From the IMG/VR virus record IMGVR_UViG_3300049793_000366, positions 1 to 64,000 of that record: DNA of 64,000 nucleotides. One strand, written 5' to 3'. Shown here piece by piece: positions 2,533-58,133 of the stretch. The position numbers and the translations under genes are program-made. The number at the start of each line of letters is the position of its first letter. The stretch's first letter is position 1. Below the pieces are notes generated by a model. It worked only from the letters and a program-made list of their open reading frames with translations, had not been told where the DNA came from and did no database searches.

Positions 2533-3252
2533 ATGATTGAATTGAATAAGGTTTACCACGACGATTGTATAAATATTCTAAAGCAAATCAGCGATAAGTC
2601 AGTAGACTTAATACTTACAGACCCTCCGTATATAATTTCACGCAAGAGCAATTTCATTCACGCAACTGAGAATATAGATCCAGTAGTGGTTGGTAAGTTC
2701 TACAAACATTCAATCGATTTTGGTGATTGGGATAAAGAACAACTTAACATTGATGAATTGTTTGCCGAATTCAGTAGAATATTAAGACCCGGTGGAACAG
2801 TGATATGGTTCTATGATGCTTGGAAGATTGGTGAGATAAAGGATATAGCGGAAGGCTTAGACTTTAAGCAACCAAGAATATGTCAATGGGTTAAGAATAA
2901 TCCAGTACCAGTAAACTCTAAACACAATTACCTATCAAATGCTATTGAGTTCTTTGTAACATTTGTAAAGAGAGGTAAGCCAACATTTAATTCGCAATAT
3001 GATAATGGAATTTATAATTACCCAATCTATCACGCGAAAGATAGATTTCACCCAACTCAAAAGCCAATAGAATTATTTAAGGAATTGATTATAAAGCATA
3101 GTGATGAAAATATGATTGTACTTGATCCATTTGCGGGTTCTTCCACGACAGCCATTGCGGCTATGGAAACAAACAGACGATGGATTATGATTGAAAAAAA
3201 TATTGAATATTATGAGAAATCCATCGAAAGACTTAAGCTCGTATATCAGTAG
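2533..3252 (+). CDS. DNA N6-adenine/N4-cytosine methyltransferase (beta class)
   Basis: LTDPPY, HPTQKP, LDPFAGS in beta-class order; ATG 2533 preferred to TTG 2512. Confidence 0.9.
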   Translation: MIELNKVYHDDCINILKQISDKSVDLILTDPPYIISRKSNFIHATENIDPVVVGKFYKHSIDFGDWDKEQLNIDELFAEFSRILRPGGTVIWFYDAWKIGEIKDIAEGLDFKQPRICQWVKNNPVPVNSKHNYLSNAIEFFVTFVKRGKPTFNSQYDNGIYNYPIYHAKDRFHPTQKPIELFKELIIKHSDENMIVLDPFAGSSTTAIAAMETNRRWIMIEKNIEYYEKSIERLKLVYQ

Positions 3253-8935: not shown

Positions 8936-8967
8936 CAAATATACGGAACATAAATGAAAAATACAAA
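8936..8967 (-). promoter_or_regulatory. Bacteroidota primary-sigma promoter
   Basis: TTTG-N20-TATATTTG upstream of the glutamate-synthase-like gene. Confidence 0.75.
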
Positions 8968-15528: not shown

Positions 15529-15560
15529 CAAATGTAATACAATCCTTTAAAATATGCAAA
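15529..15560 (-). promoter_or_regulatory. Bacteroidota primary-sigma promoter of gltX
   Basis: TTTG-N20-TACATTTG. Confidence 0.75.
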
Positions 15561-51172: not shown

Positions 51173-51204
51173 TTTGGTCACATATAAACTTTTGTTTATA
51201 TTTG
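51173..51204 (+). promoter_or_regulatory. Bacteroidota primary-sigma promoter
   Basis: TTTG-N20-TATATTTG. Confidence 0.7.
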
Positions 51205-51210
51205 TGTATT

Positions 51211-51543
51211 ATGTCAATGAAAATAGCACTATCTGGTAAATTCTCATGTTATGAGTTAATCTGTGACGATGATGGATTGATTAGGTGTCATAACTTAAAG
51301 GATGATACTACTCAAACATTATGTACATTTGATCCTACATATTTGAGTATTAGATTTAAGTCTGAGCGTTACAAAAACTTAAGAAAGTGGATGGACCGTA
51401 AAGTAAGAATACTTTATGAGTTAAATAAATCACGCCGCTCTTCTTACTCAATGACATCTGGTGAGAAAACCAGGATAATCAATGAGTTCTATTCTACTCT
51501 TAAAACAGAGGTTAGAGAGTTCAAATTGAAAGACTTAGAATAA
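51211..51543 (+). CDS. hypothetical protein with C-terminal REFKLKDL motif
   Basis: Shared C-terminal motif. Confidence 0.6.
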   Translation: MSMKIALSGKFSCYELICDDDGLIRCHNLKDDTTQTLCTFDPTYLSIRFKSERYKNLRKWMDRKVRILYELNKSRRSSYSMTSGEKTRIINEFYSTLKTEVREFKLKDLE

Positions 51544-51545
51544 AA

Positions 51546-51577
51546 TTTGCTTATTCTGAATTAATTACATATATTTG
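51546..51577 (+). promoter_or_regulatory. Bacteroidota primary-sigma promoter of the ileS leader
   Basis: TTTG-N20-TATATTTG. Confidence 0.75.
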
Positions 51578-51618
51578 TAGTCAAGAAAACAAATGAAATA
51601 AATTTCAATATATACAGT

Positions 51619-51681
51619 ATGAACTTTAACAGTATTATAATTATTCGTAAATCAACTCCTTGGTATAAACCAATTGGATAA
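51619..51681 (+). CDS. Ile-rich attenuator leader peptide MNFNSIIIIRKSTPWYKPIG
   Basis: Four consecutive Ile codons (ATT ATA ATT ATT) upstream of a terminator and ileS. Confidence 0.8.
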   Translation: MNFNSIIIIRKSTPWYKPIG

Positions 51682-51702
51682 CGAATAGTTATTACCCAAC
51701 TG

Positions 51703-51737
51703 AAAAGCCCAAGGACATTAAGCCTTGGGCTTTTTTT
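51703..51737 (+). terminator. attenuator terminator in the ileS leader
   Basis: AAAAGCCCAAGG-ACATTAAG-CCTTGGGCTTTTTTT; the 5' arm can alternatively pair with TCCTTGG at 51657-51663. Confidence 0.85.
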
Positions 51738-51774
51738 ATTGCAAAAAATCTAAAAACAAAATAAACTTAAAAAT

Positions 51775-54003
51775 ATGAAAGAGAAAAACCTAAATATGCC
51801 TCAAACAGACTTCACACAGAGGTCAGAGTCATTGAAACGAGAACCAGAATTACTTAAACTCTGGAATGAGCTTGATGTACTTAAGCTTAGAAATGAATTA
51901 AATAGTGATACATTCACTTTACACGATGGACCGCCGTATGCTAACGGTGATGTTCACGTTGGTCACGTACTTAATAAAGTATTAAAAGATATGGTTGTTA
52001 AGTATCAACTAATGAGTGGTAAGAAAGTCAATTTCAGACCAGGATTTGACTGTCATGGTTTACCAACTGAATTAGCTGTTCTCAAAAAGCATGGCAAACT
52101 TGATGTGTCTGAACTGAGAGTTAAATGTAAAGAGTGGGCAACTGAGTATTCAGATAAGCAACGCGAATCATTTAAATCATTGGGTGTTTTCGCTGAATGG
52201 GATAACCCGTATTACACGATGTCACCTGAGTTCGAAGTTGGACAGCTTAAAGTATTATATAAGCTCTTAAACGATGGATTGATGTATCTTGATAGTAGAC
52301 CTGTGTATTACTCACCATCATCAAGAACTGTTTTAGCCGAATCAGAGCTTGAATATAAAAACAGAAAAGACAAATCTGCCTATTTCACCTTGGATGCCGA
52401 AGATGGTAGATTATTATTGGTTTGGACTACACAACCTTGGACAGCGTTAGGTAACGTAGCTGTTTGTGTTAATAACAGACTGACGTATGTAACAGTTGAA
52501 CAAGATTCTAAACTATATGTTGTTGCTAAGGATTTAGCTCACGTATTGAGTGGTGTTGTTGTAGATGAATATAGTGGTGAGAGTCTTGTTGGTCTTAAGT
52601 ATCACAATAAACTAACTAATACAGAGGGTGTTGTTGTGTCTGATAAATTCGTTAAGTCAAATAGTGGTACTGGTTTAGTACACTTATGTCCAGCACATGG
52701 TGAGGATGACTTCGATGTGTGTCAGAAACATAATCTATCATGTGATGATTTGACTGATTCTGGTGGTAAACTTCTTCTGAATGGGTTATTCTGTTTAGAC
52801 CAAGGTTCAGAGTCAGTTCTTGATATGATGAAAGAAAATGGTATGTTATATTCAACGTCTGAATATGAACACTCTTATCCACATGACTGGCGAACAAACG
52901 GACCTGTTTATTTTAAGCTAACTGAGCAATTCTTCCTTGATTTGGCTGAGTTAAAAGAGAAAGTATTAGCTGTCCTACCTACTGTTGATTTCACAGAAGA
53001 GCGTTGGAAAAACAGATTAACGAATATGTTGAATTTAAGAGACCGTTGGTGTTTATCGCGTCAAAGAAAATGGGGATTCCCTTTAGCTGTATTTCTTAAA
53101 GACGGTAAGCCATTTACGCATCCAGAATTAGAAGCTCACTTATTTGAGTTGTTTAAGCAGAATGGCTCTGATGTTTGGTTTAACTCAACAGAAGATGAAT
53201 TATTACCTGAGCAATTTAAGAATACTGGTTTAGTTAAGTGTGATTATACATTAGATGTGTGGTTTGATTCTGGTGTTAGTTGGTATTCAGTTGTGGGTGG
53301 TCAATCAGATGTTTACTTCGAAGGTTCAGACCAACACAGAGGTTGGTTTCAGTCTTCATTACTAACATCAGTAGCAATGACTGGTGAAGCACCTTACAAA
53401 AAAGTACTTACACACGGATTTGTATTGGATGATAAGGGAAGAAAGATGTCTAAATCATTAGGTAATGTTGTAGAACCAAAGACTGTTCAACAAAAGTATA
53501 ATACTGATGTGCTTAGATTGTGGGCGGCTGTTGTTAACTATGGTGATGATGCACAATTAGGTGATGGTGTGTTGAAGAGCTGTTCTGAATATTATTTCAA
53601 ATTTAGAAATACGCTTAAATATTTACTTGGTAATATGTATGGGTATGATTTTAGAGAGGTACAGCTAAATGAAAAAGATAGACTGGCTCTTACTCGATGT
53701 GATGCTATGTATAATAATTGTTTAAAGTCATATTCCGAGTATAACTTCAGAAAAGTATTTGAAGAATTAATGTCGTGGGTTTCAGAATTTTCAAGTCAGT
53801 ACTTAGACAATCAAACAAAATCCTTTTTATATGAATATGATGTTAATTCCGATGAACGTCAACAATGTCAATATGTTCTTAGGTATGCATTAGAGCGTTT
53901 TATGAAAGTACTTGCTCCTATGTGTTCATTTTTAGCAGAAGACGCTTATCAACATTATGAGTTCAAACAAGATGTTTCTGTATTTATGGAAAAAATGGAA
54001 TAA
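51775..54003 (+). CDS. ileS: isoleucine--tRNA ligase (type 1), C-terminally shortened
   Basis: HDGPPYANG, HVGH, PGFDCHGLP, WTTQPWT, GTGLVH.CPAHG.DD, WCLSRQRKWG, EGSDQHRGWFQSSL, KMSKSLGN. Confidence 0.95.
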   Translation: MKEKNLNMPQTDFTQRSESLKREPELLKLWNELDVLKLRNELNSDTFTLHDGPPYANGDVHVGHVLNKVLKDMVVKYQLMSGKKVNFRPGFDCHGLPTELAVLKKHGKLDVSELRVKCKEWATEYSDKQRESFKSLGVFAEWDNPYYTMSPEFEVGQLKVLYKLLNDGLMYLDSRPVYYSPSSRTVLAESELEYKNRKDKSAYFTLDAEDGRLLLVWTTQPWTALGNVAVCVNNRLTYVTVEQDSKLYVVAKDLAHVLSGVVVDEYSGESLVGLKYHNKLTNTEGVVVSDKFVKSNSGTGLVHLCPAHGEDDFDVCQKHNLSCDDLTDSGGKLLLNGLFCLDQGSESVLDMMKENGMLYSTSEYEHSYPHDWRTNGPVYFKLTEQFFLDLAELKEKVLAVLPTVDFTEERWKNRLTNMLNLRDRWCLSRQRKWGFPLAVFLKDGKPFTHPELEAHLFELFKQNGSDVWFNSTEDELLPEQFKNTGLVKCDYTLDVWFDSGVSWYSVVGGQSDVYFEGSDQHRGWFQSSLLTSVAMTGEAPYKKVLTHGFVLDDKGRKMSKSLGNVVEPKTVQQKYNTDVLRLWAAVVNYGDDAQLGDGVLKSCSEYYFKFRNTLKYLLGNMYGYDFREVQLNEKDRLALTRCDAMYNNCLKSYSEYNFRKVFEELMSWVSEFSSQYLDNQTKSFLYEYDVNSDERQQCQYVLRYALERFMKVLAPMCSFLAEDAYQHYEFKQDVSVFMEKME

Positions 54004-58101: not shown

Positions 58102-58133
58102 CAAATATATATTAAATAATCCGGATTTCCAAA
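58102..58133 (-). promoter_or_regulatory. Bacteroidota promoter overlapping a TAATATATA motif
   Basis: TTTG-N20-TATATTTG; TAATATATA at 58106-58114. Confidence 0.7.

Follow-up and report, generated by a model that had tools for sequence, protein, structure and literature searches.

The first 64 kb of the 508-kb IMG/VR contig 3300049793_000366, which derives from a soil metagenome and is hereafter called the window, carry a gene for isoleucyl-tRNA synthetase (ileS; product IleRS) preceded by what is very probably a classical leader-peptide transcription attenuator, an element that would sense charged tRNA-Ile and control a phage enzyme containing no isoleucine (Ile). The parts of this element, its conservation, co-variation and spacing, and the Ile-free composition of the enzyme were computed directly. 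An earlier note on this DNA had described a promoter, a leader open reading frame (ORF) with a run of Ile codons, the complementary segments TCCTTGG and CCAAGGA, a terminator and ileS, in this order, and all of them were confirmed on the sequence; the absence of Ile from the IleRS was not mentioned there.

The identical IleRS protein is encoded a second time on a 712-kb contig, and the nearest deposited genome is that of the uncultured phage LR745206 (634,780 bp). Al-Shayeb et al. (2020, PMC7162821) assigned genomes larger than 634 kb to the Mahaphage clade, for which the predicted hosts are Bacteroidetes. Searches for RNA runs listed only the DNA run from which the contig stems. The window itself is AT-rich, with a G+C content of about 33% (32.9%).

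The putative ileS attenuator and its conservation among relatives

The leader ORF (51619-51681, + strand), located between an upstream ORF (51211-51543) and ileS (51775-54003, + strand), comprises 20 codons, encodes MNFNSIIIIRKSTPWYKPIG and ends in TAA. Four tandem Ile codons, ATT ATA ATT ATT (51634-51645, +), constitute its regulatory run, and tandem cognate codons in a short ORF are a feature by which ribosome-mediated attenuators are recognized. Four consecutive Ile residues are present in 3 of the 955 short ATG-initiated ORFs of the window, and the leader ORF is the only one of the three that lies between genes and has a terminator after it.

The leader is followed by an intrinsic terminator (51704-51737, +; about -18 kcal/mol), with an 11-bp G+C-rich stem formed by a 5' arm (51704-51714) and a 3' arm (51723-51733), an 8-nt loop (51715-51722) and a T7 tract (51731-51737), and ending 37 nt upstream of the ileS ATG (51775). 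Such a terminator immediately 5' of an ORF of at least 150 aa was found for 3 of 47 in the window. Within the leader, TCCTTGG (segment 2, 51657-51663, +), the 5' strand of the putative antiterminator, is the exact complement of CCAAGGA (segment 3, 51709-51715, +), which belongs to the loop-proximal terminator 5' arm and is common to antiterminator and terminator. Thus, both an intrinsic terminator between leader and gene and an alternative pairing that excludes it are present. The segment 2/segment 3 (2:3) duplex amounts to -11.2 kcal/mol (p = 0.01 against base shuffles, in the window), and a central AT-rich hairpin, designated H and delimited by the folds described below (about 51671-51702, +), spans the leader stop codon inside the 2:3 helix. 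Single-sequence statistics of this kind are suggestive only when taken alone, and the decisive evidence is the conservation across relatives.

Upstream of the leader, a promoter-like site of the Bacteroidota type (51546-51577, +) was read from the sequence, composed of TTTG (51546-51549), 20 nt and TATATTTG (51570-51577). The window contains five matches to the consensus TTTG-N19-21-TAnnTTTG where 2.1 would be expected, each of them placed just 5' of an ORF start in the correct orientation; the other four are located at 51173-51204, 8936-8967 (-), 15529-15560 (-) and 58102-58133 (-), and these further matches support a Bacteroidota host. Closer to the leader, an ATATATA box (51608-51614, +) starts 11 nt 5' of the ATG. 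Nine long ORFs of the window (ORF starts 2533, 3416 and 43561, and, on the - strand, 28702, 61143, 37749, 30597, 56075 and 2480) have the same box, beginning 11-12 nt 5' of their ATG; the leader ORF therefore bears the usual gene-start signal of this phage. Of the 19 relatives, 11 also have the box before the ATG of the leader. It may act either as a phage promoter, giving mRNAs almost devoid of a 5' leader, or as a signal for translation initiation.

The relatives were obtained by a protein search, which delimited a family of short-form IleRS of about 730-750 aa (more than 100 clusters, 45-100% identity), many of them encoded on contigs of 0.1-0.7 Mb, and the upstream DNA was compared for 20 distinct members with an IleRS identity of 46-89%. 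Nineteen of them combine a leader ORF of 18-26 codons, rich in Ile, with a terminator and a segment complementary to the terminator 5' arm, so that the Ile run is conserved upstream of homologous phage ileS genes, a check that the earlier note had proposed. The leaders include MNFNTIIIIRYSIPWSIPIG (LR745206), MKMKRNIIIIHRLNPWIPQR, MKRLNNNIIIIISMNPWRLPMGIS, MSNNYIIIISIIIISKLMCLGIIM and MNTQSLNIIQIIIAIIISISPGLNIV. The terminator hairpins of these 19 loci have energies of -14 to -22 kcal/mol, and their T-runs finish 12-41 nt before the ileS ATG, which leaves no space for a promoter of ileS downstream of the hairpin. As the upstream genes differ among these loci, the element travels with ileS. The exception, L122/L123 (1357-1500), has neither leader nor terminator, and a promoter-like TATATTTG is found directly before its ileS.

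The codons of the Ile runs across the relatives (n = 74) are ATT (38), ATA (32) and ATC (4), with no ATG; they differ solely at the third codon base, i.e., synonymously, which argues for selection on the peptide. All 19 runs combine ATA with ATT or ATC, an outcome with a chance of about 0.02 under independence, although the loci are related and the codon usage is approximately genomic; the sensing of lysidine-tRNA by way of ATA, as considered in the earlier note, is one of its weaker proposals. Since the loci are phylogenetically related, count-based p-values are indicative only.

Selection also appears to act on the RNA, given that the TCCTTGG nucleotides are kept in L004 and L135 even though the leader frame over them differs. 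Furthermore, the terminator sequence varies by subfamily, and segment 2 of the leader changes to match it. Five classes were distinguished, in which the terminator arm and the leader segment are, in this order, CCAAGGA and TCCTTGG; CCCCAAGA and TCTTGGGG; CCGAAACAC and GTGTTTAGG; GCTCTGAGGA and TCCTTGGAGA; and TCGGACC or TCGAACC and GGTCTGG or GGTTTGA. A MAFFT alignment of the 19 leaders misplaced segment 2 in the divergent subfamilies, and co-variation was gauged by duplex energies and permutation instead. The mean duplex energy was -12.2 kcal/mol for cognate and -7.3 kcal/mol for between-class pairs, and the cognate assignment ranked first among 120 permutations with three sets of class representatives, with sums of about -65 kcal/mol against derangement means of -33 to -37 kcal/mol. 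The 2:3 helix was independently predicted by RNAalifold from 15 relatives.

The spacing of these elements fits the classical attenuator geometry, with segment 2 starting 5-12 nt past the Ile run in 17 of the 19 loci and ending 6-14 nt before the stop codon in all 19. Masked folds were then computed, in which a ribosome was placed on the Ile run or on the stop codon. With the ribosome on the Ile run, the RNA preceding the emergence of the 3' arm formed a 2:3 helix of 7-13 pairs around H in 19 of 19 loci (total energies of -12 to -23 kcal/mol, and -15.8 kcal/mol for the composite antiterminator of the window, i.e., 2:3 helix plus H), and a hairpin equivalent to H, of varying sequence, was present in every locus. 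With the ribosome at the stop codon, the 2:3 structure was mostly gone and the terminator was the sole stable fold. The two alternative conformations anticipated by the earlier note are thus predicted across the 19 loci, and conservation, co-variation, spacing and masked folds all agree with the layout of ribosome-mediated attenuation.

That the leader is translated, that this translation is coupled to transcription and that it responds to Ile-tRNA we infer, the first point from the strictly synonymous variation of the run and from an ATATATA box shared with nine real genes. The Bacteroidota-type promoter, the ATATATA signal or both would start transcription 5' of the leader, and a ribosome would translate the 20 codons close behind the polymerase. 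With ample Ile-tRNA, the ribosome would reach the TAA, melting H and covering the 3' part of segment 2, and the freed segment 3 would pair with segment 4 to form the terminator, ending the transcript near 51737. With scarce Ile-tRNA, the ribosome would stall on the four Ile codons with its front edge short of segment 2, allowing segment 2 to pair with segment 3 around H before segment 4 is synthesized. Hairpin folding nucleates in the half of the 5' arm next to the loop, which is segment 3; the 2:3 pairing would block this nucleation and the polymerase would enter ileS. The IleRS so made would restore charging, and the switch would shut again. Because ileS has no Ile codon, its product could be translated without any charged tRNA-Ile.

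A synthetase without isoleucine

The product of ileS is a short-form IleRS of 742 aa that lacks the C-terminal zinc domain. Its identity, as called in the earlier note, is borne out by the TIGR00392 equivalog model (score 695.6 bits, cutoff 621.4; alignment to profile positions 2-803 of 861, the C-terminal domain being absent) and by the class I motifs HVGH (HIGH motif) at residue 61 and KMSKS at residue 557. None of the 742 residues is Ile, against a mean of 7.5% in the ORFs of the window (binomial p = 7.5e-26), and among the 79 ORFs of the window this is the sole one so depleted. At 27 alignment columns with conserved Ile in cellular IleRS, the phage enzymes mostly have L, V, M or T. The loss is common to the family, with no Ile in 65 of 104 clusters and two or fewer in 91 of 104 (0.18% overall), whereas 16 cellular-type IleRS matches from the same search contain 5.1% Ile (34-74 residues). 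A foreign origin of the gene was considered as a cause of the Ile loss and ruled out, the G+C content of ileS being 35.6% against 32.9% in the window.

An Ile-free enzyme induced by missing Ile-tRNA is a prediction of the attenuator model, and no rival explanation predicts it. The earlier proposal that the phage would make IleRS only upon failed charging of Ile-tRNA finds strong support in this composition. Moreover, the family member devoid of the attenuator, L122, encodes an IleRS with 9 Ile residues; the purge of Ile appears to relax once the switch is lost, in one case only (L122/L123).

As a background set, about 95 distant IleRS loci (35-40% identity) were taken from a scan of metagenome contigs dominated by the universal IleRS motif. 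The combination of an Ile-poor IleRS with an Ile-rich leader was found in only two lineages of this set, both from phages, and no other lineage was Ile-poor. The first (L024/L121, about 2690-2990; 35% identity), on a 181-kb phage contig, encodes an IleRS of 841 aa without Ile, preceded by the leader MKTLNTFVNSIIIIPKLPMS, which contains IIII, and by a terminator; a sigma-70 promoter (TTGACT-17-TATGAT) and an AGGAG Shine-Dalgarno site are also present. These two signals imply a different type of host, thus the design is not confined to phages of Bacteroidota. The second lineage (L015/L016, about 2896-3000) encodes an IleRS of 851 aa with a single Ile, and has an Ile-rich leader, MKTLNLIKNIRIIKAR, with no clear intrinsic terminator; the start of this leader, AAAACTCTT, could base-pair with the Shine-Dalgarno region of ileS (AGGAGTTTT), which suggests translational instead of transcriptional attenuation.

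Alternative readings and adverse observations

Such an arrangement as that of L015/L016, with an Ile-rich leader complementary to the ribosome site of ileS and no clear terminator, speaks for the possibility that leader stalling acts mainly on translation initiation, mRNA stability or Rho, and not on the intrinsic terminator. We regard this as improbable for the ileS of the window, where, as in 18 relatives, a hairpin of canonical form and its T-tract stand between leader and gene, and where the conserved complementarity targets the terminator arm and not the start region of ileS.

Another explanation would take the short ORF as a functional hydrophobic micropeptide, e.g., a membrane peptide or a toxin, and the hairpin as its terminator, with no sensing involved. 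The peptide is indeed partly conserved outside the Ile run (many relatives share a PW and, at the C-terminus, PIG), and its start signal is the ATATATA of real genes. Nevertheless, PW and PIG overlie RNA elements, namely TCCTTGG and, within H, CCAATTGG, and they are gone where the RNA partners change (L126, L131, L132 and L134), while in L004 and L135 it is the nucleotides of TCCTTGG, and not their frame, that remain; furthermore, the leaders of the AspRS, AsnRS, ValRS-like and PheS-like genes described below share with the ileS leader only the logic of cognate repeats, and no sequence. We therefore hold this explanation to be very unlikely.

Hardly more credible is a hairpin that simply closes transcription of the preceding gene (51211-51543), or of a short independent RNA, with IIII as an accident of AT-rich DNA and an ileS expressed constitutively by leaky read-through. 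In its favour, (ATH)4 occurs 15 times on the two strands of a window of 33% G+C, and weak, sub-threshold small RNA-like Rfam matches driven by the terminator (MicC, Spot 42) fall over the same span. Against it, leader, Ile run and terminator accompany ileS in 19 relatives with differing upstream genes, the codons of the run vary only synonymously, leader segment and terminator change together, and four other aminoacyl-tRNA synthetase genes have leaders rich in their own amino acid.

Several observations weigh against a transcription attenuator. The full-length RNA of the window prefers the terminator (-28.8 vs -15.8 kcal/mol) and the basal 2:3 helix has merely 7 bp; with the terminator state thermodynamically favoured, the choice must be kinetic, as in known attenuators. 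The complementarity of segment 2 is weak in L128 (p = 0.26 against shuffles), and in L024 it is no better than in shuffles. L129 and L132 keep the leader and yet have 8 Ile residues in their IleRS. The host-type promoter of the earlier note fits the Bacteroidota consensus, but its conservation is poor, the -7 box being kept in only 10 of 19 relatives. Moreover, a host in the Bacteroidota is something that we only infer, and that its transcription and translation are coupled is an assumption. Finally, in an Rfam search the best leader match was Phe_leader (RF01859), with 23.4 bits against a threshold of 55 (E = 0.54); no leader family reached its gathering threshold, and no T-box was matched even at E values up to 10.

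Other synthetases and relation to known systems

The whole LR745206 genome was read and its long ORFs were ranked for the absence of one amino acid. After ileS, the top depleted ORFs were an AspRS (433 aa, 0 Asp; L142:42643-43944, +; NCBIfam, 475 bits against a cutoff of 353), an AsnRS (392 aa, 0 Asn; L143:47522-48700, +; NCBIfam, 394 bits against 343), a ValRS-like protein (443 aa, 0 Val; L136:34378-35709, -; NCBIfam) and the PheS-related mystery ligase SrmL (359 aa, 0 Phe; L148:25818-26897, -; NCBIfam, 423 bits against 300). Each is preceded by a leader that repeats the cognate residue (MKNIRLNDDRFLLTNCKADW, MKTMTINNRNRLTDII, MKTINLNNLVVVNVSV and MNTNTTFNFFFSHKMV) and then by a terminator. 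In addition, 8-11 nt of each leader are complementary to an arm of the terminator that follows it, and the sequence of this match differs from gene to gene. A terminator is found just upstream of only 17 of 459 ORFs of this genome, among which the five synthetases are those with cognate leaders.

The pattern of a cognate-free enzyme with a cognate leader was therefore seen for Ile, Asp, Asn, Val and Phe, and in the phage of the window it is repeated by an Asp-free AspRS (L149, contig 387661-390153), with a DD-containing leader (MTIKRIKLADDCLTCLTVTD), a terminator and a 10-bp antiterminator match. The AsnRS of the same phage (L155, contig 322857-325232) has one Asn and is found after two tRNA-like sequences, with no leader. 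Among the relatives of the ValRS-like protein, those with 0-1 Val carry V-rich leaders, whereas a relative of 46% identity with 19 Val has none; likewise, AspRS relatives with 15-22 Asp have no leader. For SrmL, with its FNFFF leader and lack of Phe, the sequence suggests phenylalanine as the substrate; no match to this PheS-like ligase was found in a scan of viral contigs. As predicted from these loci, cognate-leader regulation is systematic across the phage clade and not a one-off. Three further ORFs of LR745206 are poor in a cognate residue: a weak ArgRS-like ORF of 392 aa with no Arg, directly 3' of AsnRS (L143:48720-49898, +); a GlnRS with 1 Gln against 14 expected (L144:16154-17752, +); and a GlyRS-like fragment with 1 Gly (L143:24172-24912, +). 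No obvious cognate leader or terminator was seen for them.

Leader-peptide attenuation is textbook biology, and the pheST operon of E. coli, with its leader pheM, is a known case of an attenuator before synthetase genes. The trpS and leuS genes of Streptomyces are likewise predicted to have attenuators, while ileS is under T-box control in Firmicutes and Actinobacteria (PMC1262725). The phage element resembles those of pheST, trpS and leuS in that tandem cognate codons and antiterminator/terminator hairpins precede a synthetase gene, and stalling would sense the charged tRNA. Conversely, it differs from them in its place before the ileS of a phage, in its Bacteroidota-type promoter and the lack of a Shine-Dalgarno site, in an enzyme purged of the sensed amino acid, and in the repetition of the design for several synthetases per genome; with pheST there is no sequence relationship, as the Phe_leader score shows (23 bits vs 55). 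The proteobacterial trp, his, ilv and leu attenuators have the same four-segment logic, codon run and position of the stop relative to segment 2. Unlike those operons, the phage element would act on tRNA charging instead of amino acid biosynthesis. Moreover, a clear 1:2 pause hairpin was not recognized in it, and its antiterminator is composite, with a short basal helix around an AT-rich hairpin in which the stop codon lies. With the ileS T-boxes, it would share the input, i.e., uncharged vs charged tRNA-Ile, and the regulated gene; however, T-box sequence and specifier structure are absent, and sensing would occur via leader translation and not by tRNA binding.

Regarding the enzyme, biosynthetic enzymes are statistically depleted of their own amino acid, a cognate bias that avoids a stalemate (Fasani and Savageau, 2014, PMC4209129). 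The phage IleRS follows the same principle, by which recovery proteins avoid the missing amino acid, but differs from the cellular cases in the complete absence of that residue (0/742) and in the accompanying cognate attenuator; it would represent an extreme cognate bias, carried from biosynthetic enzymes over to the charging step. In a literature search that was not exhaustive, no report was found of an attenuator controlling a phage gene or of a cognate-free synthetase. The earlier note had called such regulation unusual in a phage; within the clade, it is predicted to be systematic. The attenuator switch itself is of an already known kind; the phage setting and the self-bootstrapping, cognate-free enzyme appear to be new.

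Taken together, the Ile-free enzyme and the attenuator would make phage synthetases emergency equipment for the charging collapse of one tRNA, and not constitutive boosters. By extension, this clade of huge phages might carry a demand-induced module able to restart tRNA charging from zero, in which purged synthetases, induced by stalling, would replace failed host charging; we put this forward tentatively, as a real possibility that falls somewhat short of being probable. Possible triggers include starvation, natural synthetase inhibitors of soil, host defence directed at tRNAs or their charging, and shut-off of host synthetases by the phage. A phage CRISPR spacer targeting a host glycyl-tRNA synthetase has been described (Al-Shayeb et al., PMC7162821). 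In addition, as the leader names the amino acid, it would offer a route from sequence alone to the specificity of a synthetase, e.g., SrmL.

Stop-codon recoding was considered and dismissed, given that the ORFs of the window are intact under translation table 11 and TAA constitutes 40 of their 47 stops; for the same reason, the stop of the leader is read as a real stop. In the relative L134, the release-factor gene adjoining ileS (160-843) is called as two pieces (PCRF, 44 aa; RF-1, 134 aa), a split that could be the usual prfB programmed frameshift or a recoded stop. The window also encodes a transfer-messenger RNA (tmRNA) of the phage (59956-60348, -) with the tag peptide AKSKTTATQVEELEIA, and its rescue of stalled ribosomes may interplay with the stalling-based switches predicted in the same genome.

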